Assembly: GCA_047495785.1 (NCBI GenBank)
Contig: JBLDXI010000020.1
Span: 372,001 to 436,000 of the forward strand
Direction of reading: 5' to 3'
Length of the DNA stretch: 64,000 nucleotides
Source of the DNA: Lepidodermella squamata
Lineage: Eukaryota; Animalia; Gastrotricha
The notes under the pieces are model-generated. The model was not told the DNA's origin, ran no database searches, and worked only from the letters and a program-made list of their open reading frames with translations. Shown piece by piece: positions 1 to 64,000 of the stretch. Numbering within the stretch: position 1 is the stretch's first letter; each line of letters opens with the position of its first letter. A program made the translations under genes and the position numbers.

Positions 1-224
1 TTGGACTGATGGGAGATGACTCGTGTAGCTACATAGCTTCTTTTGGAGGAAATCTTGAATGGATGCCGGCTTTTTTTATGACCATGCTCGAAGATCTCTG
101 TTTGGTCTACTTTGATGGCTTTAAGTTGTGTTTTGAACCGAATTCATGGATGACATACGCATCAGTGTCCACTTGTTCACATAATTGTTTGATTTTAGAT
201 AATTTGAATTAACTGATAGCGAAA

Positions 225-441
225 ATGTATCAGCAGGGAATGCAAATGCCGCATGATAAGACTATAACTGTTCCCAGAATGTTTCGGGACAACATAGTTC
301 GACAGCTTCAAGAAGAAATGACGCGGTGCGGTGGTATTGGGAAATCGCCCGTCGAAGTCGAGCAGTACATTTACGATACCATTCACTCTAAGGAGGAGTA
401 CCTTGAAAAGGTCGGCAAAATGATTCTTGCTTTACAGACAA

Positions 442-472
<31 letters not shown>

Positions 473-2453
473 ACAACAGCAGCAACAACAACAGCAGCAG
501 CAACAGCAGCAGCATGCTCAGCAAATGTCCGGTCAGTACCGACAGTTCCCCGGCCAAGGCCAGTATGTTCAGTTCCAACAAAATCCACAGCAAGGCCAGC
601 AAGCTACCGTTCTCATACATACCGGACAGGGCCAAGTCGCTCCTGCTCAAATTATTCGGCAGCCAGCCTTCAATGTTGTCAGAGGTCAGCTTCCTCCGGA
701 ACACGTTGCCGCAATGCAGGGTCAGCAATTTCGACCCAACGCGCCCAGACCTGGTGTTATGACCACTCAGCAACCACCACAGCAAATGGTACAGCATGGC
801 CAGATGATTGCTCAGCAGCCTCGTCAGCAATTTCCGCCCGGCCAGGCAGTTTTGCTAGCTCAGCAGGGCCCACCTCAGCCTAATATGGTTATGGGTCAAG
901 CCAGCAACATAGTTATTGGATCGAAAGTACAGCAGGCTGCAGCGGCTGCTCAGCAACAGCGCCGCCAAGTTGCCCAGCAACCACAAGTTCGTCCTCAAAT
1001 GGAACTAGCTCCTCAACAAGCACAACAGCAGCTTGTTTATGCCACAGTGCCTGGTGGGAAAATGGAACCTCAGCAGCAACAGCAACAATTTTTTCAACAG
1101 CAGCAGCAACAGTTTCAGCCCCAGCAACAAGTTGCTCCTCAGCATTTACAGCCTGGATTTCAACAAGGTCCCCAACCGCCACAGGGGCAACAGATGATGC
1201 AAGGAATTCCCCAGCAACCTCCTCAGCCTCAATTCGTTACGATGCCGCCACAGCAAGGACCTCCCCAACAACAGCAATCAAGCGCTTTACCTCGTCAAAA
1301 CCGATCGTTCAACACTGGAATTGCTAGTCCGGCGATGGCGGTCCCTGCACCTTCTACTGGGCCATCGCCTCTTGGTCCAAAGGGCGGCCCTGGTTCCGTT
1401 GGACCAGTAGCGGCAATGTCCCCAATGGTGCCAATGGTAGCTCAGCAGGCTCCTATACCCCAACCGCAGCCTGCTCCGATTCCTCATCCGCCTATGGAGC
1501 CGCAACAACATCAGGTTCCACCTAACATCAATGCTCAAGTTGTTCAACAGCAGCAGCAAGCTAGTCAAGAAGAAATCGCTGAAAAATTGAAGCAATTAGC
1601 CAAGTACAAAGAGCCCTTACGCATGCTGATCGAAACGTATGAAGGCCACAAGGACAACTCATCAACTATGAACAAAATGAAGCGCATTCTGGATATTATA
1701 TCTGGTCAGGGGTGCGAAAGTATGGCGATTTTGCGAAAATGTGAAGAGGCATGCATTCAAGTTGTCGCACGTTACTGTCCCGAGCCATCAGTAAACCAAA
1801 TATTTTCTAATGCTTTGTCGAAACTTGTCGTCGCCGCCGAAAATATCGCCTCACAGAATCCTCAGATTGCCAGCAGTGCACCCGAAGCTTTTTCACGCAT
1901 TTCAGCGAAAGCTTTCAGTGGCGTTTCTATTGATTCCAACTCTTACGACGCTGCTGACTTGGGTGACGAATGGAATAAAAAATTACAATCTGTTAATCGG
2001 CAAGTGCCTAGTATGACTGATGGAGTAGATACTGGTCCCCTCTTCAAGCAGTTTGCCCATTTATCTCGAGCGGCTCAGCGCGAATTACTGTTTTTATCTG
2101 AGAAATATTCGATATCTTGCCGCCCTAATTCTACTAATGCTAATGGCGTGCCGACCGAAAGTATTGCTGATCTCGAGGATTCAATTTCTGTCGATTTTGT
2201 CCCGACCTTGCGTTGCCTTCTCGACGCCGGGGCGCCGTCAATCAGCATGCTGATTTCGCCAGACTATCCAGAGTCCCCCGACGTCCCGCAAGTTATATTC
2301 TCACCCGCTAGCGAGTTGAACACTCGCTTAGCTGCAATCAAGAAAAAGTTCTCTTTCATGTACGATGGTATCAAAGTCAGCAGTGTTAGTGACGTCAGCA
2401 TTATCCGTCTGATTACTTTCTACGAAGCGAGCGTTCTTTCCGAATCTACTTGA
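225..2453 (+). CDS. MED15: Mediator complex subunit 15, intronless
   Basis: 742-aa ORF with an N-terminal KIX-like domain (FRDNIVRQL...EVEQYIY...SKEEYLEKVGKMIL), long Q/P-rich middle, a helical segment (EKLKQLAKYKEPLRMLI...KMKRILDII...LRKCE) and C-terminal ISPDYPESP. Confidence 0.85.
444..512 (+). repeat. CAG/CAA polyglutamine repeat (23 Q) in MED15
   Basis: Run of cag/caa codons visible in the sequence. Confidence 0.95.
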
Positions 2454-2593
2454 CTGTTTTTAAAATCATGCTCCCAGAGCATCTTAAATTGAATCGATCT
2501 GAATCTTTCTCTGTATTGACATTTGTATTCGTTTGTATTAATTAAAATATATTGAATCTTTACTTGATCTTTGTCTATAGAATTTTTGGCAAA

Positions 2594-3998
2594 ATGATAC
2601 TTCACAAATGCTTTATTCGATCACTATCTTCCCTGGTGCCTAATTATGTCCCTCATCAACCATCTATCAACCATTTTGGCCGAGGAGTGCCGTTAACTGC
2701 TGGTATAGTTCATATATTTACACAGTTTTGATATTAAATTGTGATTTTCAGCGGAATTCGAAAGGGCTATGCTGGCCGATCCAGATTCTCCGCCTGATGC
2801 TCATTTGCTGAAGCTAGCCATCATCGGAGCACCGAACTCCGGCAAATCTACACTTGTCAACAAGTTGATGAACTGGAAACTTTCGTCAGTATCTTCCAAA
2901 GTACACACGACTCGGTCGAAAATAACTGCAATAATGACTGAAGGCAACACTCAGCTCGTAATTATGGACACGCCTGGCATGGTCTCACCGAAAAAAGCCC
3001 GTCGACATAGACTGGAATCATCAATGCTAACTGATCCTTATTCATCATTTAAGGAGGCTGACCTGGGTAGGAATCTTCTATTTGCAATTATTCCCCACAT
3101 TAAAAGTTTTTTAATAGTTATGGTCGTTGTTGATGCTGCTAATAAATGGTCTGCTTCCGAGCTGGATCCTTGCGTTCTTCGCGCCCTAGCGGAATATCCT
3201 CAGAAAAACGCAGTTCTCGTCATGAACAAGGTCGATATTGTTCGTGACAAATCGCGTCTTCTCGAGCTTGCGAAGACCCTGACTGGTAATCGAGTTCGAG
3301 GTCGGCAGCTTGGAATTCCACTGGTTGGCCCTGATGCTTACAACGTTCGAGGCCGCCGACCCATTCGAGATATTATCAACAATTATTATGCAAAAATTCA
3401 ATCGAAAAATGTGCCGGTTTCAGAGGCTGAAGTCATCGAAAACGAACCTGATGATACGTCTACTGAAATCATGAGATTGCCTGATGAAGAACCGACATAC
3501 CCAGTTTCAACCCTGGTCACTCAGCAGCTAGCTGGCTCTTGGACGGGATTCTCCTCGCTCTTCATGGTTTCCAGTCGTACTGGCGATGGCGTGGCTGAAT
3601 TGAGGCATTTTCTTCTGAACAGTGCTCAACCTGGCCAATGGCTCTACCCCTCTCGAGTTGTTGTTGCGCGATCGCCTGCAGATTTGGTCATTGACATAAT
3701 TCGAGAGCAGCTACTTGAATTGTTACCCAGTGAAGCTCCATACGAAATTGGCATTCAAGTTGGCTATTGGGACGCAGAAACCGACCCTGGCTTGCTGAGA
3801 GTTGCCGTTTTTCTCGACTGCCCTCGGCCTCGTTACCACCATCTGCTAATTGGCCGTTCAGGCGAAACAATCAAGCTCATTGCAATGAATGCGAAGCAGC
3901 AATTGATGAATCTTTTCCGGACAGATATGACCCTAAAAATAATCGCCAGAGTCACTCGAACGAGTGACAGCTTTGCCAAACCCAGCGAGGAGGACTAG
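2594..3998 (+). CDS. ERAL1: Era-like mitochondrial GTPase; exons about 2594-2702, 2752-3066, 3118-3998
   Basis: GAPNSGKS (G1), DTPG (G3), NKVD (G4) and a C-terminal KH-like region. Spliced N-terminus MILHKCFIRSLSS resembles a mitochondrial presequence. GT-AG introns 2703-2751 and 3067-3117. Confidence 0.9.
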
Positions 3999-4085
3999 TC
4001 ATTTTTATCCCATTTTTAGTAGCAATATATGTTATTAATTTTCAATGCTAATTCTCGTATAGATTTTTGGTTAAAAAGTCTTAAG

Positions 4086-4624
4086 ATGACGGATATTCAG
4101 ACCGAAAAGGCTTTTCAGAAGCAGCCTACCGTCTTCTTGAACAACAAGAAGCACAACCTGCTGAACAAGAAGACGTCTCTGCGCCACTACCGCAGCGTTG
4201 GTCTTGGCTACAAGGTCCCCAAGGAGGTGAGTGGCAAGAGAAAATAGTATATTTAAGTCGGCTTTTCATTTTTCTTGAACTTTTTTAGGCTATCGTTGGT
4301 CACTACATCGACAAGAAGTGCCCGTTCACTGGTGATGTGCGCATCCGCGGCCGTATTTTGACCGGTATCATCACCAAGATGAAGATGCAGCGCACCATCG
4401 TCGTGCGCCGCGATTACCTCCACTACGTGCCCAAGTACAAGCGTTACGAAAAGCGTCACCGCAACCTGTCTGCTCACTTGAGCCCGTGCTTCCGCGACGT
4501 CAAGATCGGCGATGTTGTCACCGTCGGTGAGTGCCGGCCGCTGTCGAAGACTGTGCGCTTCAACGTGCTCAAGGTGACCAAGGCTCCGGGACAGGGTCGG
4601 ATGAAGTCGTTCTCCAAGTTCTAA
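4086..4624 (+). CDS. RPS11: 40S ribosomal protein S11 (uS17); intron 4227-4288
   Basis: [14 protein letters not shown]...GLGYKVPKE|[24 protein letters not shown]...[17 protein letters not shown]. Confidence 0.97.
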
Positions 4625-5500: not shown

Positions 5501-8256
5501 TCAAACGGTCTTTTTACTGTCCTTGTTGGCTAGGGTACGACCACTGCGTAGTTGGTGATACTCGCGTTTCGCTAGTTCGACTCTAATCCATTCAGGAACA
5601 TCGCTGATTACTTGATTAGCGAATCCACGCATTGCAAGAATGAGGTGTTCCAAAATAATGACGACTATCAGGGCTGAATAGGATTTTTCCGCTACCGTGG
5701 AAGGGAAGAATTCATTTAATACGTTGAAATTAGCGATCAATGCAACGTTGACGACGACTGCACCAACAGCAAGAACATCAAGGGCGTGGCGCCAAATGCC
5801 GATGTCGCGCATTCGCTCGCGCGCAAATGGTCGCTGGTACACTGTGACCATTTTCAGAGCATCGGTTCGAATTTCGATCAGATTGTTTAGGAGGCACCAC
5901 ATAGCAATCGGTGGGAAGGCGACACCGAAAAGCATGATGTAACCGAGCTGGCAATACATTTCCAGGTAATCTTCGAAGCAGTCATCAAACTATATTATGG
6001 GAAACATAGAATTCATAGGAGGATGCAATCGTTCGCAGATCTCACCTCTGGCATCACAAGTTCGCTCTCGATTTGAGAGATCGTCGTCGTTCGATGTTCC
6101 TCGATAGGTATCTTAGCAATATCCGAAATCGCGCCAACAGATGACGATCGCCTTTTGCGACGCGTTTGCATCAAAAACTCCAGATCTGAAAATTGGCAAT
6201 AAATTAGATAGCGTATTAACAAAACCCACGCTGGGATGATTATCTCTTACTATTCGCAACTGTAGCAGAGAGTGAAGACGAGCTGTCATTTTTCTTCTTC
6301 GCGATCATGAATTGCTGGTATCTTGCGAGCAAGTAAGGCGTCAGAACTTCGGCTATATTTCCGGCAATTTGGCGTAGCATCACAAGGGCAGCGACTTGTT
6401 CTTGCAGCGCTTTGAAATCTTTCTCATAAAACGCGGTGTAAAAAAGCGGCAAAAATCCGTTGAAGAATTTGAACTAAAGAAATAGAAATAGAATTAAATA
6501 AAAAAGGTACTTTGTAGTTGATTCGGAAGCATCTTACAACAATGAGCTTGGCTTGTAAGTGTTGGACGTAGTCGTTTTGCGAAAAATGATTTTCTAAAAC
6601 CGTGAACTTTTAATTACCTGTTTTATCAGTCCATTAGCGCTATTTCTTACCCAGGTCGTTGAGTTTATAGGCCAGGGTGGTATACGCGTTGTTGAAAAAA
6701 TTCAAGATAAGAACAAAAACGAGTAAAGGCAGCAATCGGGCAACCGAATCGAGAGGGAAATGCAGAACTTGGACGAAAGACTTGGTATAATTTTCCAGAT
6801 TCAAGCTGAACAAAGCCGCGCACATCATAATCCAAAGGCTGATGATGCTGACCGGTACTGTGACCAGGTAAAATATTGCTGTCCTCTTCCATTCAGGCCA
6901 GTAAAGAGTTGGCTTCCCGGTCACCGGGTTCGTCGCTGGGCTGCCCTGCAGAAATCAAAAAATCGTTTGGAGAAATTAAATGACAATGAATGTTCTGATT
7001 TTCAAGTGAACATTGTGAAATTTTCGACACGTACCAACAAACATGGACATATCAAAAAGCTATAATTTACTGAAAATAGAGGCCGCGGCTCCGCGAAGAA
7101 TTTATCGCTTGAATCTCGATGGTCAATGGCAACCCATTTGAAAGCAAGCTCATGATTTCGACGTCGCCAGTACTTGCGAAATAACGCAAACCAGATTGAA
7201 TTGAAGAAAATTATCAACAGGAATGCAGTGCTATTGATAGAGCTGTCGCAAATCTCATCACCCGGATGAGACACGAGTCGCGAAAGAAAAGTTGGCTGAA
7301 GTAACCACGTAATTAGCCCAAATAAGGCCGGGGGTAGCAGCCACTTCGTGTAATGCTCGAGCCATGCGAAGTACAAAGCGATAGACGTATCAAAATAGGA
7401 GCAAACTTCATCTGTATAGAATTTGAGAAAATAATCAAACCAATTAAAATTTGCCTCAATACCGAGAGGTTGCGTCAGGAGCAATTTCGATTGGACCCAA
7501 TTTTTACGGAGTTTGCTCAGTTCGTCCTTCGAATGTAGAGGGAAGAAGCTTTTTACGACTCCGCCGATTTGCAGCGAAGCCACTGAAATATCTATTAATA
7601 AAATTAGACTAACTACCTGAATACTTACGTAATGGCTGCCGGCATGAAACTTGAACGGATCCGTATTTTTCAAAATTATCGACAACCTTTATTGTTTCCA
7701 AAGCGTGCTTTATCAGCTGTTGTCGTTCTGTCCTTGTGAAAAATGTTTCTGGCTGGTCGCTGCCATCGAAATGATCAAGGTCGCAACGGACGAAAGTCCT
7801 CAGGTAGCCAGTATGTTTTTCTCGCTTTGGTAGGCGGAAATCTTCGGCCCATTGGAAAAGCCTATCATCATAATATCAACTTCTAATACTTCTTTTAATT
7901 AATCATTTCATAGCTAACGATTTGGAATTTGCTGATATGCAAAGCGCTTTTATATCGGTCAACGAACAAGTGCGAACATTAAGACCTGAGCGCCGTGCGG
8001 AGATGACCTTGGCTAGTTTTCTGGCAGTATCGGAGGTTTCGCCTTCTCCGAGATTGATAACGACATCGCTTTGAGCTGGCGAGGAGGCAGCTGTCGATGA
8101 TACGCCTTCCATGAACAAGTCTCCGCCAGTTAATTCGGCAAATTCATCAGCATCATACTGCTGTAGTTCCCCATCGCACGATAATGGTGCCAGATATTCT
8201 CTTCCATTTTCAGCGATGCCGCTTTGATCCCCCAGTGTTTGCTCGGCCGCTGCCAT
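5501..8256 (-). CDS. ANO8: Anoctamin/TMEM16, ANO8/ANO10 clade, multi-exon
   Basis: DEVCSYFDTSIALYFAWLEHYT, LFYTAFYEKD, FEDYLEMYCQLGYIMLFGVAFP..LLNNLIEIRTDALK..QRPF, IGIWRHAL, ILEH, ISDVPEWI. Orthologue assignment (ANO8 vs ANO10) is tentative. Confidence 0.85.
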
Positions 8257-9405
8257 TGCTATTAGTTAGTTGAGATGGGAAAACGAAGTCCCGAAGAAAA
8301 AATGGATCATGAGAAGGATTATACGAAGTTTTGTGCCTGCATATATGGAAATTATTGACATATTTTCATATTAATTTAATGCTCGAGCCGTCTGCTGGTT
8401 TGCCGCAAAGAATAAAAAACTATACTTCCGACTAAAATGCACAGCTTCCTATGAAATTTTTGTGCAGTAAAAACGCATAACAATGATCCTACAGAAAAAA
8501 ACAGGTAAGCGTAAATTGCTGGTTCTTCGCAACCCGTTGCAGTATCGATGTTACCGCTCATCGTCAGCTCTCAAGACAGCTGCGTTAGGTTTTTTTCCGA
8601 ATTGATAGATATGGGGCAAAACATGAACATTAATCGATACGGAAAGTGCTGTTTGAAGTGTTACAATCCTACCACCTCTGATAAAAAAGAACAGCTACCC
8701 ATAATTGCGAATCGACACGACTTGATTCTGCTGAACACATAGAAATAGGAATGTGCCCAGTATTAGGTCAGTTTCACTTTTTTATTCACTGAGTATTCAT
8801 CGATCCAATCTGTCTGGAGGCAGCTGAATTCCGGTAAGCAAACATCACATTTCACTTTGAAAAAACCACCAGCATTTATTAGTTATATACCGAGATAACA
8901 TTCGATCGAGAAATGCAAGAGAAAAATAACATATATTATTGACAAAACTTCAATAAGGCCGCCCTACGGCTTTGTCTTGTCCTATCTCGTTGCCAAGTTC
9001 ACGCAAAGTTAATCATCCTTGGTTTTATATCCATAAAAGCGATTGTTCTTGAGGAAACCTAAAAAAGGAAATTTATAATAAATATCTGGAATTTCGATGA
9101 ACAAATTATGGATTTATTTTATTTGAAATTTGGGACCGAGCACCAGAAAAGCAAGAAATATCTCTTTCGAATTAGCCTTAAAAATTATGTCAAATTTTGG
9201 TTAAACAACCGTTGACGGAGCCATGAACAGGAAATAACGCAGAATTTCAGTCATTATTTTGACCTGCTATTGTGTAATCCGTAGTTTCACCTTGGACTAA
9301 TTTTATAATTCTTTCGTCAAAAAATCATTGGGACTTTATACTTCATGTATAAATGTCCCTAACAGATCCCAAAAACGATCATTCGAAAAATTATTGATAA
9401 AAGCA

Positions 9406-10741: not shown

Positions 10742-13030
10742 TCATAGAAGCATCAGCGCCGGGTTTTCCATGAGGCGCTTGAACTCGGCTAACCATTGCG
10801 CCCCGACGGCACCGTCCACAACACGGTGGTCGCACGACAGCGTTACGCTCATTACCGTCGCGTGTCGCAGGTTCGCCTCGTCGACGGCGTCCGAGACCGA
10901 GGCATTGGCAGCGGGTAGTACTCGAGGGATGGCCGATCCGACGGCCAAGATGCACGCTTGAGGTGGGTTGATGACGGCGGCGAATTCGCGGATGCCGAAC
11001 ATGCCCAAATTACTGATAGTGAACGTGCCTAAAAAAAGTAAATACACTCAATTATCTTGAATTTTTCGGGGTTAAATTGTCAACTCACCTCCTTGAAATT
11101 CGTTAAGCTGGAGGCGGCCTTCGCGCGCCTTTTTAGCGAGGCTGATGACGCTGCTGCTGATCTCGCTGAGGCCCTTCGAGTCCGCGCCAAACACGATCGG
11201 CGTAATGAGGCCATTTTCGGTGGCAACAGCAACGCTCATGTCGACCTTGGCGTAGCGGCGAATGACGCCGGCTGATTCGAGCCAGGCCGAGTTGCACTCA
11301 GGCACCTTCTTCGACGCAAGAGCTGCCGCCTTGATTATGAAGTCGTTCACTGATAACTTGGCCGGCTTTTCACCTTTGCCGGCCTGCTTTTCCAGCGAAG
11401 CGTTCAATTCGGCTCGAACTTTCAGCACAGCGTCTACCTCGACGTCCGACGTGAGGTAGTAATGTGGGATGGTTTGCTTCGACTGCACCAAACGCTTAGC
11501 AATAACATTACGGATGTTGCTGATCGGAATATCGACGTAGTCAGCAGTGGAAGCGGCGATTGCTTGCGGTGTACGAGAAGCAGCAGGGGCAGACGCGGCC
11601 GCTTGGGTCGCCGGGGCAGCAGCGACAGGCGCAGCGGTGCCGGCGTGCTTCAGCACGTCAGAAGACGTGATCAAGCCGTCAGCGCCAGTTCCGGTGATTT
11701 GGGCGAGGTTGACGCCACGCTCAGCCGCAATTGTGCGGGCCAATGGTGAAGCCAGAACTCGGGTATTGTTCGGCCCGACCGCGGCTGGCGGCAAAGCTTG
11801 AGGCTTGTCGGAGAACGGCCGCGAAACTGCTGCGCCTCCGGACTGAACAGGTGCGGCAGTTGCGGGTTGATGTTGACTGGCGGCAGGCGCAGGGCTGGCA
11901 GCGGCGGCGGCAACAGGTTTCGGCGCTGCGGCAGCAGCTTCGACGAAATTGGCGAAGGCGCCTACGTCACCAGCTTTCGGCGATATGACGCAAATCAGCT
12001 GTAATTCATAACCTATAGAATCACATATTTTGTTCATCGGCTAATTTACAAACCTTTCCAACCGGTACGTTAGCCGTATTTGCTTGTACAAGAATTTTAG
12101 CTAAATATCCGGGTTCGGGTGTTTCAAAAGCCATCGTGGCTTTGTCCGTCTGGATTTCACACAGCACATCACCTTCGTTTAGCTGATCACCCTCCTTTTT
12201 CAGCCACGTCATTACAGTACCAACTTCCATGGTCGGGGATAGAGACGGCATCTTGACTTTAAAATGCTCCGGGTATGAAGCAGCTGGAGCCGCGGGTGCA
12301 GAATCAGATTGATGGACAGCAGGCGCCGCGGCAGCAGGAGCGGGAGCGGAGGTCGGTGGGACGGCCGCTGCCGAATCGCCAGAAAAATCCTTGAAAGCGG
12401 CAGCTGAGCTGTTATCAGGTACGATAACAGCAATGAGCTGGATCAAAGAAATGCATGTTTGGAAATCTTCAGTCACTAATAAACATACCTTGCCAACGGG
12501 CACATCTTTGCTGTTTGCAGGCATAAGAATTTTGGCTAAAAATCCATTTTCCGGGGATTCGAATGTCATCGTCGCTTTGTCGGTTTGAATTTCGCAAATC
12601 GGTTCGCCCTCGCTGACACTATCACCTTCTTTTTTCAACCACTGCACTAAAGTCCCGGTTTCCATTGTGGGCGAAAGTGCCGGTAATTTGATCTTGAAGT
12701 GTTGCGGTAACTCTGAGAGGAAACGACGTTCACAATAAGAATGGTAAGATAAAAGTATAATACCCCCGGAAGCAAAATTTCTTAAGACCATTTTGTTATA
12801 CGGAACTTTGACAAAGCTGAGGCCTCTTGCAGCAATAGGACTCGTAGTTCCTCTGCAATAAATTACGATGTGATTATAAATAGAATAATAGTAACAATCA
12901 CAAACCTTCCAAGAGAGATATTGGCAGTTGAGAGCGCTGTCCTTTCGTTCCCCATCGCTGATGAAAATCTGCGAGTGATGGAGATAACGTCCCTGGACTT
13001 CCCATTTTTCAAAATTCGAAAGGCCTTCAT
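10742..13030 (-). CDS. DLAT: Pyruvate dehydrogenase E2 dihydrolipoamide acetyltransferase, two lipoyl domains
   Basis: Presequence [11 protein letters not shown], two lipoyl domains ([14 protein letters not shown]), E3-binding ASPLARTIA, catalytic [11 protein letters not shown] and [11 protein letters not shown]. Confidence 0.95.
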
Positions 13031-13539
13031 CTTTCGTGTTAAAACTTGCAACACCTATGAAAAAGAAAACTATAGAAAATTTCATTTTCTCAACTCAAAA
13101 ATAGTTTGTGGTTGAACAGATATCACGATACATAATATGTGACTGCGTTATCAAGACAACCTGATCGAATCTACTCGAGCTCTCTATTTTTGCCATCCAC
13201 GAGTGTGACAAAGCTCTATATTTCATATAAAGTGACAGTGTCGCAAAGAGTTGCACACGCATGCGAACAGTAAAAAGCATGGTCTTACTGTCCACCGAGT
13301 GCTTAAGGTTTCTTCAATACTACAAAATATTATTTAGTATTTGACCCGAATGGGGTCTCTAAAAACTAGTCATTTGTTGATGTTACGGCCACTCTGTTGC
13401 TTAATTGCGGAGGAACGTTCTTACGTGAATACACTCTTAATAAGGTTTCTTAATATCATATTTGGTCACTGTCTGCAGGTTTTCGCGACAAGACTTTATT
13501 ATTTCTTTTACAAACACGGTCATCAATTGATAGTACATC

Positions 13540-14270: not shown

Positions 14271-15293
14271 ACACAATAAAACCAGAAAATGTGCAAAAAT
14301 TTACAAAACTAAATAAACTCTAAAGTGATTTCAATACCAAGGTTTATTCTCTATTCGCTCTTCGATCCATAAGCAAAATCAGAGACAACTTAGACCCAAC
14401 TAATCTATCGCTCTTCGCTCTACTACCGGCTCCACGCTGATATCCAACGCAGAAGGAACCACCTAAACGAGAATACACGGACGATACCGCCAACCGAAAG
14501 ATCATTTTGCACAGCGACACGTACATGGGACATTCTATCTAAGAAAGAAGCCTTAATAAGTCTTGGAGGCAATGAAGTCAACGCTTCAACGCGTTATGTT
14601 CGTTTTAAACGCATTAGCAACCGTTACTCCTAGCGTATGAAGCGAGACAAAAATGACTGCAAAAGATATCTCACGAGAAAACAAGACGTGACGTCTATCA
14701 TCTAGCAAACTTCCACTAGTTTCTTTTCCTGCTGTTTGCTCTCCCTTCTCCTCAGTCTTCACTTCTTTTTCTGCTTTTCCGATTCGATCGATTTTCCGAA
14801 AGCCGCAAGAAGAAAATATATACCGCCAAAAGTATTGCTTTTTTGTTAGTGACATTTAAAGTACAATTTATTATAAACATGTTGGGTTATAAATTTATAT
14901 TATTGATTCAGAAAGACATTTTATTATAACAACGAATTTACGCTAGCAACGCCAATCAGCACTTCAAAACCCGAGGTTAACGCTAGACTCCGCAGCTCTG
15001 ACCATAGTTAATGGCTATCACAAGGCCGTGCATTTGGATAACACTGCGCAAGACTGAAAACTTGTAGTCACTGACCTTTTCTTTCAATGGGAAGTTGACA
15101 AACTCGACCTCGCAAAGCCGCTACCTGTAACGATTCTTTAGACCAAATATATCATAGCTCCATTTTCATATTTATTCTGTTTGGAAGAAATCAACTTAAG
15201 CCCTCTAGAAGCACCAGGAATGGCGACAGTAGCTTAATCTAAAATTCTAATAATATAATTGACATTTTTAGGCGTTAAATTTGTTGCTTTTTA

Positions 15294-15530: not shown

Positions 15531-15626
15531 GAATAATAATAAATAAAGAGAGTCCATCGTTATCGAATGCGTTAATAAAGTTATTTTCACACTACAAGCT
15601 CTCTTTTGTGAATCTTAGAAATTAAG

Positions 15627-49369: not shown

Positions 49370-51181
49370 ATGTCCGATGAGCGGGTTCCTTGTCGCGTTT
49401 GTGGCAGAAACTTCGCCCCTGAATCTGTGGTAAATTAATACTTTTGAATTTTCTTGGTTCTGTGCAGCTCTTCCTGTTTGCAGGGGCGTCACGAAAAGGT
49501 CTGCTCAAAAGCAACGACAAAGAAGCCTCGCAAGGTATTTGATTCAGGCAGACAGAGGGCTGCGGGATCTGACGTACCCTACACCAAAACCTTGAAACCG
49601 GCACCCTCGTACGCACCGCCAAAGTACCCAGATGCTCCGAAAGTCAGCCCGTTCAAAACACCTATTCGTGAAGTACCGAAGAAATCAAATTGGCGGAAGC
49701 AACATGAGGATTTCATAGCAGCTGTGCGAGCAGCAAAAGCCTATGGACAAGCAGTAAAAACTGGAGGCCCTCTGCCTCCGCCAGCTCCTCCTTCAGAGAA
49801 TCCCGGTAAAATACTTAATATCTGTTGAACCATATTACATGCATTACCATTTAGATTATGTTTCGTGCCCCACTTGTGGTCGTCGTTTCAATGAAAATGC
49901 TGCCGCTCGCCACATTCCATTTTGCGCCGAAAAGAACAACCGAGTCCCTACTCGGAAAACAGCAGACCAAGCTGCTCAAAAGCGAGCCAATGCTCGAAAC
50001 TATGTCGCTCCCATGCCCGGCAAACCTAAAAGTACATCTGGCGGTGGCGGGCGCGGAATGGGTGGCTATGGCGCGGATGGTGATTATTACGACAGCTATT
50101 CCCCGTCTTCTCAACCTCAAAGATTCGGTAATAATTATTCTTCTCCTTATTCGTTGATGTCCTGTCAACTATTAAAAAGTCGTGTCGTTAATCATGTTTA
50201 ATCTCTCTGTGTTAAGCTCCAGCGCAACCGGTTAGGAGAGGAGTTCCGTCTGGTGGGTCTGGGGGTAGATATGCAGCTGGTTCTGGCAGCCGACAGGTAA
50301 TCAAAACAAAATTATTTGAGTTGACACCTAATATTTCTTATTAAATAGATGATGGATGATGGTGACTTTGACTCAACCTACGTCATGCCTGCTGCAGCGG
50401 GTCCGCGGGGTTCTAGACTGGGCGCCGGTGTACAATCTAAAACACAACCCCTGGGCTCCAGCACTCGCCTAGCCGCGGTATCGGGCGGTACTGGCCGTGG
50501 CGGTAGCCCTCTAGGCGCTTCATCTGCATTTGGAAATCGGAATCCTGTCGCTAGCGGTGGGCAGGCTGTTTATCTCGGTTCAAATCCCAGGTAACATATT
50601 GCCTTTTATTCCCGTGAAATGTCGAATCAAATACCCAATAGTATATGACGTCAATGTTGACGAGTAAAGAACCATGAGAAAATTATGTATACAAGGCGGT
50701 CTATTCAGATGCGTAAAAAACACTCACCGATGTAAAGACTTGCATTGCTTTGCTCAAACACGGCTTTGACTTTTTCATACTGGTATATCAGTCGTTGAAA
50801 TTGTTGCAAATAGCTGTCTTTTACCCGCAGTACTCTTATACAGCGAAGTTGAATTGTGTCAGGTCGTAACAGATAAGGCTGTCAATTTATGTTGGGAAAG
50901 CAAAAAGTCTACACTTTTTTGGATGAGGAATTTGTGTTTATTTTAGTGGCGGCATCCAGGGCCGTGGAACTAAACCGGGGGCTGGTGGCGTGAATGGAGG
51001 TTACGGTGACTATGACTCGCCTCCGATGGGTGGTGGCGGCAGCAGCAAACCAGTGGCGTCACGAGGCAGCAATGGTCGCTCTGCTGAGTCTGGCCAGTTC
51101 TGCTACGAATGCGGCAATCATTATCCGAGCAAAACAGCCAAATTTTGTGTCGAATGTGGAGTGAAGCGGATCGGTTTTTAA
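49370..51181 (+). CDS. ZC2HC1A: Zinc finger C2HC domain-containing protein 1A (FAM164A)
   Basis: PCRVCGRNFAPESV|GRHEKVC, RKVFDSGRQRA, NWRKQHEDFIAAVRAAK, YVSCPTCGRRFNENAAARHIPFC, and C-terminal FCYECG..AKFCVECGVKR. Confidence 0.9.
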
Positions 51182-52239: not shown

Positions 52240-53858
52240 TTATTGAGTGCAATCAATCATGACCTTGATCGCTCCAGTTGCAATGGCATTAGCTGCAGTT
52301 TCGAAAGCATCAACGGTTTGCGACAACGGAAAGGTGTGAGTGACCATCTTGTCCAGGCCGATCAACTTTTTGGACGCTACCAGGTCAACAGCTGCCTGAT
52401 AGGTGTTGTTGTAGCGGAAAATCGATCTAATATCGATTTCTTTGCAAATCATGTCTAATATCGGTAGAGCGTTAAGCTCGTGATGGTAACCGACCAGCAT
52501 CAAAAGACCGCAGCGTTTTAGGGCGTAAATTGTAGCCTGCTGGAGAAGTTCCACACCAGTTGTATCGAAGCAAACATCAGGAGCGCGCCCGGCAACGTCA
52601 ACGATTTTCTTCGCCAAGCTGCGAGAAGGCGAATTGGAATCCAAATAATCAGCCTTACGATCAGGGTTCGGCTTAGCGCTGGGATCCAACAAGATGGTCT
52701 CAACGTCGTCACCAAAAAGCTTTTTCGCAAACTCCAAGCGGCCTTGGTTTATATCTGAGTGAAAGTGCAATCGGATAATGAAATCATGGGATATTTTAAT
52801 AAATCAAACCAGTAAAAACTGTTTTACTGCTTCCCGCAGAACTAGCGACCATTTTCAAGCACAATCCGACAGGGCCTTAAAACGTCGGTTATTGATGGTA
52901 TTATTTCAGGCAAAAAGCGTCTACCTGCGCCATGAATAACGACAATATCGCCAGCTTGGACGTTAGCACGGCGAACAGCCCCAACAGCGACAGCAACAGG
53001 CTCCACTAGAGCAGCCTCCTCATCGGTAACAGTATCGGGAATCCTGATGGAATGAATGAAATGAACCGCTTTGAGGCAATACCATTCTAGAGCTGCTTCT
53101 TACTTGAAACAAAAATCAGCAGCAATGTTGACGAAATTTTGCAAGGAGCCGTGGCAGCTGGTCGCAAAAAACTGTTCATCCGGGCAAAGGTTATAACGTC
53201 CTGAAAAGACGGTAAATACATAATATTGAAATGAGAGGCGTGCGTCAGCAATGTCTCTTTTCAGCTCCCTATTCACTGATGACGTATGACGTCGTGTATA
53301 GACTTGTTTTCTATATCGGACCTGATGCACGCTATGACGTATCAATATACATACCGATGTGGCAATATTCACAAGACCTGCACGGGACACCTGGTTCAAC
53401 GGCCACTCTCTCGCCAACTTTGAAACGTTTCACATTTTTGCCAACCCGTGTTATTTTACCGCCAAATTCGTGCCCCTTCATTGAAATACCTTAGGAACTA
53501 TCACATGGGCTTAAGGAGAAAGTTACCATAACCAAAGCTTTGCTCATCGGGAACATTCCAGATAATGAACCATCTTTGTAAAAATGAATATCACTGCCGC
53601 AAATGCCAACTTTCGCTACTGCCACTTGGATTTCTGGATTAAGAAATTATACGCCCAAGGTTGAATCACAATTGTGCAAGCAGCGTTTCATTTTTTAGCA
53701 AGCCGCGTTCAAACCGTGATCTTCGGGCAAAGGAACTGCGACTTTTTCCTTGATTGTTGGCGAATTAAATTATTATTGATCCTGGAAAAAATGCTCACAA
53801 TTTTAAAGTCCTTTGGGCCGTAGAGCACAGCGCCAATGTTGTTGCTCGTATCTGCCAT
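52240..53858 (-). CDS. SORD: Sorbitol dehydrogenase-like zinc MDR alcohol dehydrogenase, multi-exon
   Basis: VGICGSDIHFY, M|GHEFGG, VGERVAVEPGVPCRSCEYC..GRYNLC, GA|GPVG, IFRYNNTY, VTHTFPL, AIKVMI. Confidence 0.88.
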
Positions 53859-54188
53859 GAATTCAAGATAGCAAACTCTAGCTTGAAAAATGAATTTTTT
53901 TATTTCTTGTTAATAATTATTTCGTGATAAGTAACACATGCGCAGTTGTCAGACCAGTGAAATTCGCAGCATCAGATCACAGATTTATGACTTGGTTGAA
54001 GTGGAAAGAAAAAGATGCAAAGACAAAACAAATCGTAACTATACCGAGATTTCTCTCAACTGAAGCACACGCACACGGCACACGGTACACAAAATCAGTC
54101 GGTGTAAATAAATATCGCTCTATTCTGACATTATTTATCGATATAAGGCAATCAGATAATTTTGTAAATCTCAAAATCTCAGTCATTT

Positions 54189-58152: not shown

Positions 58153-59403
58153 CGTGTCCTTTAGATTAGCCTATCATTCTGGCGAAAATAAACTTTAAAA
58201 CTTGTTGAGCGCATAGCACATGCCCTTGAGCAGATGAGACCAACCCTGAGCCCTGATCAATTTACTTCAATCCTTCGGCGGGAGAAATATTTAATATAAA
58301 TAATATAGACTGAGGCAAATCAATGCGAATCCATAAGGGAAAAGAAATGGAACATTGTCCCCCACGCTAAGCTAGCTGATTCCAGCGCAGTTGCGCACCA
58401 CTTGCTTGGGAAGTACTGCGCTCCAAGCAGCTCAGTCTTCCCAAGCAATGCGTCTGGCGCACTGTTGTATTCGGTCGGCGAGAGTATGGTGAGGCGACGT
58501 TATGACTAAAGTGACGTATAAGACTAAAGTGATGAAAGCTACACCGCAACAGCCAAGGACCTTGAGCTAAAGAGCGAAAGAAGCAAACCCAGTCGATCGC
58601 ACTTCTTAGGCACACTTAGACACACACACATGCCAAGCGTCGCCAACCCAACGACTTTCCCGCTAAACTCGAGCATAATTGACATTAATAAACGCCTAAT
58701 AGACGTATTTTTATAACTAAGCGCCTGAAAAAGTGATGATATAAATCCTTGTTGGTTTTTCAAAAAAGCCGAATCCCCGCAAAATCTCGCGTTAAAAGTG
58801 GCTTTTTGCGGTGTTGACGCGAATCAACTTCGGGAGCAACAACGGAAGTTTTTGTGAAGGGAAGAAAGAATGCTTATACTGCTTTTTGCTACATAAAATT
58901 GATATTTTCTTTATGCGCATCATGTGCTGTGAACAATATGATATGAAATATGGCATCCAATTTAAAGAAAAAACTCAACTTATATTGGTCCTTTCCAATA
59001 GTTTGGAGAATACGTTGTAAAGCAACCATAAGTGATGTAGGACTAAAGTAGCTTGAAATTGATTGTTTAATCGTTCATAATTCATTTGACGTTCACCAAG
59101 TACGCTGCTAATAGGGCAAAACAAGCGGTATGTAAATGACTTGCCCATTTCCCATTTCCCCTAAAACAGCATTACTAAACAGCTAACCGTGTGCTATTCG
59201 TCGTTTGCGAAACACTCCGTGCTGGTGGTAAAATCGCCCTATCATCCTTCGCCACAGGCATGGTGGTTTTGCGCTTTGCTATAATGCTTTATGCTTTATA
59301 TCTGAGGTTACTGCCTGCAGAAATTATCAATCATCTTAATCTACTCAAAAGCCAGATAACCATGAACTCATTTTTATAGACTGCCACCCAGTGTTATTTA
59401 TTC
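58153..59403. promoter_or_regulatory. Divergent intergenic region, probable bidirectional promoter for the SCAPER-SORD and CNOT10-GMPR-POFUT2 units
   Basis: Head-to-head arrangement of two co-oriented gene runs. No core promoter motif identified with confidence. Confidence 0.45.
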
Positions 59404-61857
59404 ATGGCGGAAGAACAAGCTCTATGTCTGTCTGCTTGCGAGCAGTTCGCCAAAGGCGATTTTTCTGCTGCTGATGAGAGTTTAAAAGCACTTGGCGAAA
59501 AGCGAAGATCAGACTGGCGCACAACGTTGAACAGAGCCATCGTTTCATTCTGCTCTTCGCGATTGTCAAAACTCGACGAGTTTCTGTCAGAGCTGACTAA
59601 GATTTGCGACCAGGTACTCCGCGTGGTTTGCAAAGTCCTTGCATTTGTCATTGCTTCTTTTTAGCTTCAAATCAAGCTGGAGGTCGGCTCTTCTGCCTCC
59701 ATTAAGCAGCCGCAAGATGGAACAACACTGTGTCTATATTATAATTACGCTTTGTCCTTATTCTTGGGCTGTCAATATTCAGTGGCGACTTGCGTTGTCG
59801 AAAGACTGATACCTTTTTGTGAGCCATACGGTAAGGGTCGATTTCGGTGGTAAATTGATTTTACAAAATTTCTAATATTATTGCAGATGACTTGCTGTCT
59901 CTAAAAATAGCTTTCTTAGCTATCCACTTGCATCTTATTCGTGGATCATACGAACGGGCCCTCAACATAATTTCACAAATTGAAGGGTCTCTTCTGTTAA
60001 ATCCCCCATCAGACAGTCAATTATCTGAATCGGACAGCATTGCATCGACCAAAAATAAAATAGCTCTTTACAAAGCGTATTGTCTCTTGTTATCTGGCAA
60101 CATGAAAGGTGCGATTTTGTCTATAAGTTGAAATAACGTAAACTTGTCTTTCATTTCAGCTTCGAAAAGAGAGTTGAAGCAGCTCTCTAGTAATCTTTCT
60201 TCCAAGCCAAATCAGGGTAGCGCCAACTATTCTGGATATATGCTGGCATGGCTCAAATGTCACTTCGAATATTTGCGAGGGAATGGACGTAAAACACTGA
60301 AATTATTAAATGGAGTGCCGGGTCAGCTTGGTATGATGTTCTCACCCGGCGTAACCCCACTAAGCCTCTAATCATGCATTTATTTAGCTCCAGAAGACTT
60401 TCCATTTATGGAAAATATCGCCTTGCCCGGTTTCGATCACAAAGCGTCTTACGCGACAATTAAAGCTTGTGGCTTATATCAAATGCGTCGTTTCAACTCG
60501 GCTGCCCAACTGCTACTGGAGGCATGGGATGCGATCGACAAATATTGCGAGGACACCGCAATCGGCAGTGGTGCGCTGTCTTTGCGAACTCTCAGTTTCG
60601 CCGGGCCAGCTTATTCAGCTGTTGGCTATAACATTGCGTGCTGTTTTCTTCACGCGGGCTTGTATCGTGCTGCATTCGACGCGTTTATTTCCACCCTTGG
60701 TGGGGTGAAGCATATGCCTCAAGCATGGCTTCACATCGCGGAATGCTGCATTCAAATTAATGAACAAAGCAAACAGAATATGCGATCAAATTCGTGCCGT
60801 CTCTCAATTGTCGGCAACAGTTTCGGCAATGGTCTTCATCGGAAAGTCCCCGTCAGCTGTGACTTTTTGCGGCAAAACTCACCGCCGCACAGTGACGGAC
60901 AAACTAACCACCATCACCATCAACAGCGCCCGAGTCTGGAGTTTGCGAGCGCATGCTTATCCAACTGTCTTATGCTCATCGCTCAGTACCGGGCTTTGAA
61001 CGGGTCTGCTGCGAAGGCCTCAGTTTCAGACGATCAAACTCCCAATAAGTTGGCGAATAGTCGATCAGTTGTTGTCATTTTAATTATTATTTAATTTAAT
61101 TTAGGGCAAATATGTCTGTGGGATTGCCAATGTCAGCGGTTTCGAGTGAAACCTTGGATGCGATACAGGCTCAAGCTTTACTATCTCTCGCCTATGTTTC
61201 GTTGTGTCTCAACAACTTCAACTTGGCTGTGAGGACTTGTTTGGATCTGCTCGCGCTGGGAGCAAAACTTACTCCTGTCGTGAAATATCTTGGTCATTTA
61301 TATATGGCCGAGGCTCTTATTAACGTTGATCGAATAGCTGATGCCATGGGTTATTTACAAGCCGGAAATTTAGCTCAAGATTTTTCTGCTCCATCTCAGC
61401 TGGGCGGCGTTGCGAGTGGTCGTGTTTCGGTTTCTAGTCTCAGCACGCCTCGTGAGCGGTCCATCGATGCCGACCAGGGCGACGGCTCGTCTAACGCGCA
61501 ATCAGCGCCTGTGCCTCAATTTTGGCCTAATTCGCAAGCGGCTGGTCAGGCGGTCCTAGTCTACAATTTGGCCGTCGCCTACGCCACTCGCGGCGATATG
61601 GAGAAAGCGAGAATGCATCTAGAGACGGTAATTTATGGATTATTATTGCATGAGCGGGATAATTATCGCCGTTATTGATTTATGCCTTATGTGCCTGTGT
61701 TTACTTTCAGGCAATGTCGAGCATCGCCGAGCCGTGGCCTGCTCATTTCTATCACCTTGCTTTTTACCTGGCGCTGTGCGACGCGCCGACGATGGGTGCA
61801 AGCCGAGCTTTGGAATTGGTGCGCAAGTACTATACTCACGTCACGCCCAACAGATAG
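59404..61857 (+). CDS. CNOT10: CCR4-NOT complex subunit 10, multi-exon
   Basis: LKCHFEYLRGNGRKTLKLLN, WLHIAECCI, PSLEFASACLSN, LAYVSLCL…YLGHLYMAEALI, YNLAVAYATRG. Confidence 0.88.
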
Positions 61858-62046
61858 TGAAGCTGTCTAGTCGAATCTTCTTGCTAAATTTGACGCTTTA
61901 TGTACCCACTGCCCTGAAGCTATTATGTACTGTTGTGCTGATTTAATAACACCTTGAATAAACTAAAAGCAATTTTGTCTTGTTTATCACAGTGTAAATT
62001 TGCCTTTTTAGGTGGTTGAATTTAAGACTACATAGTTTGCCCAACA

Positions 62047-63212
62047 ATGCGTATCGATAACGATATCAAGTTGGATTTCAAGGTTTGCTCTCATCCCAGT
62101 TTTCGTGGTTGTATAAATCATTGTTATGATTACAAAGGATGTTCTCATTAAACCGAAGCGAAGCACGATTCGCAGCCGTGCCGACGTAAATTTATTGAAT
62201 ATTTTTAAATAATTTTTTTTAACCATTCTTCATTCATTTAAAGGCGGATCTCACTCGCGAATTTGTTTTCCGCAACTCGAAGGCGAAATACACGGGTGTT
62301 CCGATCATGGCCTCAAACATGGACACCGTCGCGACTTTCGACATGGCTGCTGCTCTGCACAAGTTCGACATTTTCACGTGCATTCATAAACACTACCAAC
62401 CCGAAGACTGGGCTCGGTTCGCTAAACAAAATCCTGATAATTTCCGCAACATCGCTGTAAGCGCTGGCATGTCTGATAATGACTTGAAACGCATGCGGGC
62501 TATTGTCGAAGCTGTACCCGAGGCTCGCTACCTCTGCCTTGATGTAGCAAACGGCTATTCGGAGCATTTCGTCGACTTTGTTCGCCGAGTTCGCGAAGAA
62601 TTCCCGAACCATACGATTCTGGCTGGTAACGTTGTCACTGCGGAAATGGTAGAAGAACTGCTGCTATCCGGCGCTGATATCATCAAGGTCGGCATTGGAC
62701 CGGGTAGTGTTTGCACGACCCGCAAAAAGACCGGAGTTGGCTACCCTCAGCTGTCGGCTGTTATCGAGTGCGCCGATGCCGCTCACGGCTTGGGCGGGCA
62801 CATCATTTCCGATGGCGGCTGCACGAACCCTGGAGATGTCGCTAAAGCCTTTGGAGCCGGTGCTGACTACGTTATGTTGGGCGGTATGCTGGCAGGTCAT
62901 ACGGAATGCAACGGCGAGCTGATTGAGAAGAACGGGAAGAAATTTGTGAAATTCTACGGAATGAGCTCTTCAACTGCCATGCAGAAATACGCTGGTGGTG
63001 TTGCTGAATACCGTGCCAGCGAGGGTAAGGTGGTTGAAATCGAATACCGTGGCCCCGTTGCCGCCACCGCGCAGGACATTTTGGGCGGCCTTCGCTCGGC
63101 CTGCACTTACGTTGGAGCTGCCAAGTTGAAAGAACTGAGCCGTCGCACCACCTTTGTCCGAGTCACTCAGCAGACCAATGAGGTCTACACGCCATTCAAC
63201 GCTGGAAGTTGA
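62047..63212 (+). CDS. GMPR: GMP reductase; two short 5' introns
   Basis: [12 protein letters not shown]|[47 protein letters not shown]. Confidence 0.96.
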
Positions 63213-63563
63213 ATTCTTTGAGATTGATAACGATTTGAAAGAAACGTTTCAAATACATGCGAGACATTGTTCATTTTTATGAGTTTTTGCCGCTTTTTTG
63301 TCTTTTGGTCCGGCTATTGTGATAATCGCCTAGTCAAGTCATTGCCTCACATTCCGGTTTGAATCTGGTTTAAAATAGTGCTGCTCTCTGTTGTGCGCGT
63401 TTTGTTCATCTGATCACCGAATCTTCAATTAACAGTGTTGTGATATTTCACAGATGATATCGTCGCCCCTCTGTGAAATTGATCGGCTTTACTTACTCAC
63501 ACTTGAGCGATTAAAACAGGGGACTTTGTTTTACATGCTTCTTTTTTCTCATAGCTTAGAGAT

Positions 63564-64000
63564 ATGCACGCTTTTATATTAATTTTATTTTTGCTTTATC
63601 GAATCGACAATGCCTCAGCTGAGTCTCCTGAGACACTGACAAGGTTTGACATATTTACATGCATTTTTCAAATATTTACCTGTCATTTCAGCAGATATCT
63701 TTTGTACGACGTGAATCCGGTTGAAGGTTTTAATCTGCGGCGCGATGTTTACATGCGCATGGCCAATTTAGTGAAACTCATGAGGAAGAAGGACTCTGCT
63801 TGGACTTTGGTCCTACCTCCTTTTACCAATCTTTATCACTGGCGCTCGATTATTGATCAAGAAAAGCTACCCTGGTCTTACTTTTTTGACGTGGCTAGCT
63901 TAGCAAAACATGTTCCTGTGATTGAATTCATTGAATTCCTGGAAATCGCCAAAGCTAATCCTTTGTCTAAATCAGGCGATGTTTACAACGTAATAGACGA
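63564..64000 (+). CDS. POFUT2: Protein O-fucosyltransferase 2 (5' part, runs off the window)
   Basis: Signal peptide [11 protein letters not shown], then R|[26 protein letters not shown]…WTLVLPP…LYHW. Confidence 0.9.

Follow-up and report, generated by a model that had tools for sequence, protein, structure and literature searches.

A spliced leader on RPS11 mRNA and multi-copy leader genes in the rDNA spacer point to probably widespread trans-splicing in a compact animal genome

The RPS11 mRNA of this animal receives a trans-spliced leader at positions 4061-4062 of the window, by which we mean the whole 64-kb stretch of DNA analysed here. The genome carries hundreds of genes in which such a leader is followed by a splice donor, and leaders of the same family head transcripts of two relatives, so that spliced-leader (SL) trans-splicing, which the initial annotation of the window had proposed for this animal, is borne out. 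Trans-splicing from two leader genes, SL-A and SL-B, is probably also the explanation for most of the other AGs marked upstream of start codons, which would then be outron acceptors, and it is likely that most mRNAs of this animal receive a leader. Site by site, the leader was seen directly at one of the 16 starts (RPS11, in assembled contigs) and through an orthologue at one (GMPR).

SL trans-splicing itself is a well-known mechanism. As applied to this genome, the SL-A and SL-B RNAs would supply the leader and its GT donor from genes in the rDNA spacer, the spliceosome would join the leader to an AG lying a few to approximately 40 nt upstream of the ATG, and the part of the pre-mRNA upstream of that AG, the outron, would be discarded.

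A leader on the RPS11 mRNA

The RNA evidence consists of assembled contigs of three public runs (X1, X4 and X7) over one 6-kb stretch. That these contigs represent RNA is seen from the introns at 3067-3117 (X1) and 4227-4288 (X1 and X4), which are spliced out. RPS11 was covered in X1 and X7 at 50 to 1000 times the depth of the neighbouring genes. In three contigs, two from X7 and one from X4, the match to the genome begins at 4061, that is, at the RPS11 acceptor AG, and is preceded by non-genomic letters, GATTGAATATAAAAGTGTCTA in X7 and CGAATTCTA in X4. The X4 letters match the end of the SL-A leader exactly, while those of X7 match SL-B at 19 of 23 positions. Since the X7 leader differs from SL-B at 4 of 23 positions and the assembly contains no closer copy (none of the leader as printed at up to two mismatches), X7 appears to derive from a diverged strain, whose ERAL1 sequence differs by approximately 2%. 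The 64-kb window contains neither leader (no 11-mer match for SL-A or SL-B, and no 18-mer at up to three mismatches), and cis splicing at RPS11 is therefore excluded. The search of RNA for a shared leader, which the initial annotation had suggested, found one joined exactly at the predicted RPS11 AG, a result that concerns this site and not the others. At MED15 the X1 contig ends at 225 without extra letters and is uninformative on the leader, and the 5' exon of ERAL1 was covered by no RNA contig.

Could the leader on RPS11 be an assembly chimera of rDNA-spacer transcripts and RPS11 mRNA? The contigs were built from public runs by de Bruijn assembly, and the two RNAs are each abundant, but we find this reading hardly credible. 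One side of the joint coincides precisely with the SL donor and the other with the AG acceptor, and two runs belonging to different studies yielded it in three contigs in all, with two leader types. A chimera at k = 31 requires a shared 30-mer, and none exists. Finally, an RPS11 and a GMPR contig from two additional samples, unrelated to these, have same-family leaders at their 5' ends, as described below.

The SL-A and SL-B genes

The SL-A leader (L006:4668-4699:-) reads AAATATCTGCGTATCGATTTTCGAATTCTAAG and the SL-B leader (L006:5136-5168:-) reads AAATATCTGCGATTGAATATTAAATTTTCTGAG, each followed by a GT donor. A genome-wide count gave 536 leader-plus-donor copies for SL-A and 461 for SL-B, against 0 for the reversed controls; in round terms, the intact copies are put at about 500 to 540 for each gene. 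The copies sit mostly in the rDNA intergenic spacer, with one of each per 8.46-kb rDNA unit; there they adjoin the 5S gene and run in the same direction as it, opposite to 18S/28S. The leaders end in TCTAAG or TCTGAG, and a full-length cDNA from a relative puts their length at approximately 32 nt.

Past the donor, and judged against the Sm reference RAU3-6GR, SL-A carries an Sm-like site (AAUUUGAG) and then a 7-bp GC-rich hairpin, and SL-B carries AUUUUAG, an imperfect version, and then a terminal hairpin of approximately 12 bp. The block TAAATATCTGCG is common to the two genes, as is an ATACSGGCA..AAA..TTTT element upstream. When the SL RNAs were folded, their energies gave z-scores that were not significant against shuffles, and covariation requires more than two sequences. 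The initial annotation had also advised looking for an SL RNA gene, and leader and GT donor were indeed found together, in hundreds of copies. Two metagenome matches to an SL-A 20-mer were dismissed as chance, both being internal and without SL context.

Leaders of the same family in relatives

Two contigs from uncultured relatives, obtained from two separate and unrelated environmental samples, carry leaders of the same family. The first (L021) encodes a GMPR that is 84% identical to the GMPR of the window and has the same N-terminus; its 5' end consists of a cDNA-adaptor tail followed by the leader AACCATCTGCGAATTTTGATTTGTGTCTAAG. The second (L024) contains the closest RPS11 in the collection. 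From the leader CTGCGATTTCGTGTTCTGACTAAG at its start to the ATG the distance is 24 nt, compared with 23 nt from the acceptor in the window. A further RPS11 contig (L025) was uninformative on the leader, as its UTR measures only 5 nt and its N-terminus differs. A high-scoring GMPR match labelled 'Darwinula' was not accepted as a close relative, since it is a long-intron gene matched in two stretches.

Acceptor-like sites upstream of start codons

The initial annotation had placed an AG 2-35 nt upstream of the start codons of the window, and this was confirmed at all 14 of the sites for which it gave a coordinate or motif (Table 1). In each of the 14, a T-rich tract closes in YAG and the next ATG is the start of the ORF. 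The coordinates of the MRPL34, SORD and candidate SCAPER acceptors were located in the present analysis.

Table 1. Marked start codons of the window and their acceptor-like AGs; spacers run from the stop codon of the preceding gene to the acceptor
Gene	Position (strand)	Upstream sequence	Acceptor AG	ATG	PWM score	Identity and remarks
MED15	183..227 (+)	T-rich tract	197-198; second AG 218-219	225	8.0 (99.8th percentile of all AGs)	Pfam Med15_N and Med15_M
ERAL1	2454..2596 (+)	127-nt spacer from MED15 stop	2579-2580	2594	2.76 (96.6th percentile)	Feature search and protein search (best match 37%)
RPS11	3999..4088 (+)	64-nt spacer from ERAL1 stop	4061-4062	4086		Pfam Ribosomal_S17; RNA-verified
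ANO8-like	8254..8275 (-)	ctaactaatAG	8260-8259	8256	-4.4	Low score; CTAAC motif
DLAT	13028..13070 (-)	ttttcatAG	13056-13055	13030	3.9	Pfam Biotin_lipoyl, E3_binding and 2-oxoacid_dh
CFAP141	15257..15296 (+)	catttttAG	15270-15271	15294	7.3	Pfam CFAP141
LRRC63-like	15531..15629 (+)	88-nt spacer from CFAP141 stop	15617-15618	15627	4.5	
NR2E3-like nuclear receptor	20685..20720 (-)	ctaacgttttttatAG	20706-20705	20687	4.3	Pfam zf-C4
Adhesion-GPCR-like	34075..34105 (-)	tttttcctgacAG	34092-34091	34077	-2.1	
MRPL34	34717..34760 (-)	ttgtttaatAG	34745-34744	34719	3.4	Single-exon 73-aa ORF; Pfam Ribosomal_L34
ZC2HC1A-like	49347..49372 (+)	aacttgatAG	49360-49361	49370	-0.5	
SORD	53856..53892 (-)	catttttcaagctAG	53879-53878	53858		Pfam ADH_zinc_N, on a downstream exon
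SCAPER, putative start	58683..58735 (-)	cactttttcAG	G at ~58725	58685 (putative)		Feature search on downstream exons
CNOT10	59365..59406 (+)	catttttatAG	59378-59379	59404	3.2	
GMPR	61997..62049 (+)	gcctttttAG	62010-62011	62047	6.5	Pfam IMPDH
POFUT2-like	63540..63566 (+)	ttttttctcatAG	63553-63554	63564	2.6	Score belongs to the AG ending 4 nt before the ATG, not to AG 63553-63554

A bare AG upstream of an ATG is a non-discriminating criterion, because of the 2110 ATGs that the window contains, 90.6% have a plain AG within 40 nt upstream. Acceptors were scored with a PWM trained on 33 hand-curated cis introns from the 64-kb window, and an acceptor was called cis-quality when it reached at least the lower quartile of the cis acceptors and lay no more than 40 nt upstream of the ATG. 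Among the marked starts, a set that was the earlier reader's own selection, 10 of 14 have a cis-quality acceptor, compared with 23.5% of AT-matched ATGs and 11% of all ATGs in the window. The difference between marked starts and AT-matched ATGs is significant (binomial p = 2e-4; Mann-Whitney p = 6e-4), and when the same upstream segments were shuffled, 10 of 14 was reached in only 2 of 2000 shuffles. The comparison with an AT-matched background, as had been recommended with the initial annotation, shows that good acceptors are enriched.

These figures bear on the possibility that the pattern is compositional, with AT- or T-rich upstream sequence producing AGs most of which are no splice sites. 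The ubiquity of the plain AG, the 23.5% of AT-matched ATGs that have a cis-quality acceptor and the 4 of the 14 marked sites that score below the cis lower quartile are what such a reading would draw on. We judge it very improbable in view of the 10 sites above that quartile and their rarity among shuffles. Moreover, the RPS11 site scores poorly and is nonetheless a proven acceptor, from which it follows that the matrix is a weak detector.

A second reading accepts the AGs as splice sites and takes most of them for cis acceptors of introns in 5' UTRs, each gene having a promoter and a non-coding first exon of its own farther upstream and the leader being confined to a small number of strongly expressed genes, RPS11 among them. 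There is room for such introns at some loci, since at least nine genes have at least 300 nt of upstream sequence (for example, GMPR 333 nt, POFUT2 342 nt, SORD approximately 310 nt and DLAT approximately 380 nt). Published systems also trans-splice only part of their genes, at least 39% in Oikopleura and about half in a chaetognath. Against this, ERAL1, RPS11 and the LRRC63-like gene follow spacers of 127, 64 and 88 nt, respectively, which are too short to hold a promoter together with an exon and an intron, and the GMPR orthologue of the relative carries the leader. In addition, the stretch of 5' UTR between a marked AG and its start codon is always very short, as is usual in organisms that trans-splice. 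On balance we consider cis splicing at most of these sites unlikely and favour outron acceptors. The remark in the initial annotation that several genes have too little upstream room for a 5' UTR exon and a promoter stands for the three genes with short spacers.

Gene spacing and operon-like pairs

The three short gaps, measured from stop codon to acceptor, all separate genes on the same strand, namely MED15 and ERAL1, ERAL1 and RPS11, and CFAP141 and the LRRC63-like gene. A 59-nt gap upstream of MRPL34 was not counted as a gene-to-gene spacer, as the ORFs upstream of it resemble a decayed retroelement. Trans-splicing would allow genes to sit 64 to 127 nt past the stop codon of the previous gene, and such tight spacing would reflect either operon-like pairs or promoters within the upstream gene.

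The pair ERAL1-RPS11 has the features looked for in an operon, namely a very short same-strand spacer and a downstream gene that carries the leader. In X1, the match of the ERAL1 contig to the genome breaks off at 4045, which leaves 17 nt to the RPS11 acceptor. The depth of RPS11 is approximately 1000 times that of ERAL1, a gap that fits poorly with simple co-transcription of the two genes and argues for a separate RPS11 promoter.

Implications

Every gene model in this genome is affected, in that transcription starts are not inferable from the 5' ends of mRNAs, promoters may lie inside upstream genes and operons may account for same-strand genes at close spacing. With the leader as a handle, full-length cDNAs can moreover be retrieved from mixed samples for this animal and for its relatives, which the two environmental contigs illustrate. 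A wider and more tentative suggestion, for which we put the chances at somewhat below even, is that SL trans-splicing is previously undescribed in the lineage (class or phylum) of this animal. The leader family of approximately 32 nt, with 5' ATCTGCG and 3' TCTRAG, present twice per rDNA spacer and shared with uncultured relatives, might then mark an unrecognised trans-splicing clade with operon-like pairs. Should the mechanism indeed prove unreported there, the lineage would add one more case to the long-running discussion of whether SL trans-splicing arose repeatedly among animals.

Comparison with known leader systems

Searches with three proteins turned up no close named relative. The best match of ERAL1 reaches 37% and that of GMPR 78% (molluscs and a sponge), and RPS11 matches at approximately 80% across phyla. 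The single-exon MRPL34 and CFAP141 proteins had no exact match on record in public assemblies. In the searchable literature, leader strings of 13 to 15 letters had no match and terms of 9 and 10 letters matched unrelated papers; nothing relevant was found on SL genes in rDNA spacers, and nothing on tardigrade SLs.

In C. elegans, the SL1 leader is 22 nt long, SL1 RNA genes lie on the 5S rDNA repeat, and operon spacers are approximately 100 nt. The system described here resembles that of nematodes in having a small RNA with leader and GT donor and, here in putative form, Sm site and hairpins, encoded by multi-copy, 5S-linked genes, as well as acceptors close to the ATG and same-strand genes approximately 60 to 130 nt apart. 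It differs in its unrelated leader of approximately 32 nt rather than 22, in the location of its genes inside the 18S-28S spacer and in the presence of a motile-cilium gene, CFAP141. The initial annotation had argued against a nematode, and the Pfam-supported CFAP141 gene agrees with it, as does the absence of the nematode SL1 leader from the genome at up to three mismatches. Rfam searches of the window and the rDNA unit (the latter with E up to 1) returned rRNAs alone and no SL family, the nematode families being RF00198 and RF00199. Genome-wide, RF00198 (SL1) had no match, but it had none in the controls either, so this result carries little weight.

A compact genome with introns of approximately 50 nt is a likeness to bdelloid rotifers, for which PMC1925144, citing Pouchkina-Stantcheva and Tunnacliffe (2005), gives an SL of 23 nt. 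The bdelloid SL followed by a GT donor is not in the genome; a single match at three mismatches lacks the donor, and the reversed control also produced one. No rotifer proteins are among the best matches of ERAL1, GMPR and RPS11.

Oikopleura dioica has an SL of 40 nt with 5S-linked genes, operons and introns of approximately 50 nt (PMC6883708, PMC8008620). Compactness and 5S linkage are shared with the genome analysed here, which is, however, twice the size, and the 5S-SL loci of Oikopleura lie apart from its rDNA arrays. The Oikopleura leader, which ends in ..GTCTAACAG, is weakly similar to SL-A and SL-B in their 3' halves (shuffle p 0.005-0.05). Kinship was not deduced from this likeness, as a euglenid leader scores equally well, and no Oikopleura proteins are among the best matches.

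Chaetognaths have several leader types together, operons, and SL genes that reportedly tend to be located in rDNA clusters (PMC2481426, PMC12460157). Chaetognath leaders are 36 nt long and start with GGAAGCT.., and they, like those of copepods, Ciona and Oikopleura, are clearly different from SL-A and SL-B. The system of this animal resembles that of chaetognaths in the occurrence of several leader types side by side, in the location of leader genes in rDNA and, through its operon-like pairs, in gene arrangement.

Gene content and candidate acceptors

The window is gene-dense animal DNA with a GC content of 40-48% and very short introns, of which lengths of 51 and 62 nt were confirmed by RNA contigs. 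The gene names given in the initial annotation were borne out by Pfam matches (MED15, RPS11, DLAT, a C4 zinc-finger nuclear receptor, MRPL34, CFAP141, GMPR and a sorbitol-dehydrogenase-type enzyme) and by feature searches, which recognised ERAL1 and SCAPER. A T-rich tract with a terminal YAG is likewise present at each coordinate that had been named, with a reading frame opened by the next ATG 2 to 35 nt downstream; site coordinates were added for MRPL34, SORD and a doubtful SCAPER start. Within MED15, contigs break at a long polyglutamine-encoding run (Table), which was skipped as a repeat in read mapping.

As a criterion, an AG upstream of the ATG, as worded in the initial annotation, shows no excess over chance, since a plain AG is found within 40 nt upstream of 90.6% of all 2110 ATGs in the window. 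Intron-quality acceptors were therefore scored using a matrix derived from 33 cis introns curated within the window. Such an acceptor lies within 40 nt of 10 of 14 starts; the share is 11% when all ATGs are counted and 23.5% among AT-matched ones (binomial p = 2e-4, Mann-Whitney p = 6e-4). When those upstream segments were shuffled 2000 times, an equal score was reached only twice. The enrichment before these starts, which were those chosen by the initial annotation and were scored with a weak matrix, is real.

RNA evidence at RPS11

RNA contigs were examined over window positions 1-6000, covering MED15, ERAL1 and RPS11; those of MED15 and ERAL1 end short of the 5' ends. Public sequencing runs X1, X4 and X7 were classed as RNA since both introns are spliced out in X1 and X4 contigs and RPS11 depth is 50 to 1000x that of its neighbours in X1 and X7, while run X6 behaves as DNA. 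ERAL1 in X7 is approximately 2% different from the window, indicating a diverged strain.

The predicted RPS11 acceptor was confirmed in two X7 contigs and one X4 contig, in which the match to the genome begins at 4061. The letters before this point, absent from the genome there, are GATTGAATATAAAAGTGTCTA in X7 and CGAATTCTA in X4. The match opens with AG, which suits the acceptor and the leader end alike, so that the RPS11 message reads ..TCTAAG joined to 4063. That the leader pieces in both runs are shorter would be expected of k-mer contigs for a sequence common to many messages. Neither of the two leaders described below was found in the 64-kb window, which excludes a nearby cis exon for RPS11.

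Between RPS11 and the ANO8-like gene is a telomere-like CCCTAA/CCTAA run, where X6 reaches a depth of about 4900, compared with about 80. Its contigs have many loose ends there, a pattern like that of a repeat or transposon junction.

Leader genes and their family

In the spacer of the 8460-bp rDNA unit (L006), the strand opposite that of 18S and 28S carries two small genes, SL-A and SL-B, followed by 5S. Both small genes have a leader with a donor directly after it. The last eleven letters of the SL-A leader equal the X4 letters plus AG exactly; the SL-B leader matches the X7 letters at 19 of 23. Each gene has an Sm-like site 3' of the donor (AAUUUGAG or AUUUUAG) and a strong terminal hairpin, and a start block and an upstream element are common to both. 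The genome contains 536 SL-A and 461 SL-B leader-plus-donor copies, versus zero for reversed controls.

SL-A copies are almost all inside rDNA arrays; SL-B-type copies, some slightly altered, also occur outside. The spacer also has two copies of a 32-nt motif that are 91% identical. The SL-A leader begins about 290 nt downstream of one copy, and 5S lies 25 nt downstream of the other. The motif may be a common promoter element or may point to a further, third small gene between SL-B and SL-A.

Locations of the leaders and of other sequence features
Feature	Location	Strand	Description
SL-A leader	L006:4668-4699	-	AAATATCTGCGTATCGATTTTCGAATTCTAAG, then GTATGA
SL-B leader	L006:5136-5168	-	AAATATCTGCGATTGAATATTAAATTTTCTGAG, then GTTAGT
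32-nt spacer motif	L006:4466-4497 and 4991-5022	-	GTCGCCAATGACCAYGTGCATGTGGT..
SL-B-type copies outside rDNA arrays	G000 (genome) C1:2749879, C4:990325, C7:2115404, C9:2558206, C15:4942059, among others		leader plus donor
MED15 repeat	window 438-520		CAG/CAA run
Telomere-like run	window 5040-5130		CCCTAA/CCTAA
ORFs upstream of MRPL34	window 34800-36300	-	stop-ridden, reverse-transcriptase-like stretches
ORF on RPS11 cDNA contig of a relative	L024:902-2025	-	convergent, 450 aa

Neither the species' own proteins nor those of a close named relative were found in the protein collection, in which ERAL1, RPS11 and GMPR were searched exon by exon. The closest sequences to GMPR (84% identical) and to RPS11 are two environmental cDNA contigs of relatives. 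The GMPR contig (L021) has a template-switch adaptor tail followed by AACCATCTGCGAATTTTGATTTGTGTCTAAG, a UTR of 46 nt and an N-terminus that is the same as in the window GMPR. The RPS11 contig (L024) begins CTGCGATTTCGTGTTCTGACTAAG, with the ATG 24 nt later versus 23 nt in the window. The leaders are one family: the block ATCTGCG at the 5' side is followed by a T-rich middle, and the 3' end is TCTRAG or CTAAG. In the contig with the adaptor tail, the 5' end falls upstream of the ATCTGCG block, giving a leader length of about 32 nt. The convergent ORF on L024, 377 nt downstream of RPS11, suggests that convergent genes overlap at their 3' ends in the relative's compact genome.

Proposed mechanism and gene spacing

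In the proposed mechanism, SL-A and SL-B would produce SL RNAs of about 100 nt, whose leader would be spliced to the AG just before the start codon with loss of the outron. Trans-splicing of this kind would account for uniformly short 5' UTRs and very tight same-strand gene pairs. Stop-to-acceptor gaps are 127 nt from MED15 to ERAL1, 64 nt from ERAL1 to RPS11 and 88 nt from CFAP141 to the LRRC63-like gene. The ORFs directly upstream of MRPL34 resemble those of a decayed retroelement, and the gap before the MRPL34 acceptor, short as it is, is therefore not a spacer between two genes.

One ERAL1 contig loses its match 17 nt before the RPS11 acceptor. Despite the closeness of the ERAL1 stop, RPS11 contig depth (window 3999-4700) is about 1000x that of ERAL1, which calls for either a strong promoter within ERAL1 or a large difference in mRNA stability. 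Given the difference in depth, we favour for this pair a promoter inside ERAL1 over plain co-transcription.

The initial annotation had proposed that most mRNAs are trans-spliced. In kind this holds, as shown by one trans-splice junction, at RPS11, by the donor genes and by the leader family in relatives. That most mRNAs receive a leader is likely, while leader use at the other 15 marked sites, the proportion of genes concerned and the presence of operons are inferred.

Comparison with known systems

Nematode SL1 was not found in the genome or the rDNA unit, nor the bdelloid rotifer leader in the genome, and the leader strings were not found in the searchable literature. In Brachionus plicatilis, a monogonont rotifer, no leader had been found by an EST study of 2007. 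The leaders also differ from those of chaetognaths, the 46-nt copepod leader, the Ciona leader and that of Oikopleura. Their 3' halves are weakly like the Oikopleura leader, but a euglenid leader is equally alike, and the resemblance was treated as convergence rather than kinship. Oikopleura has 5S-SL loci outside its rDNA arrays, whereas here they lie inside. The anatomy of the leader genes resembles that of classical SL systems, a well-known kind.
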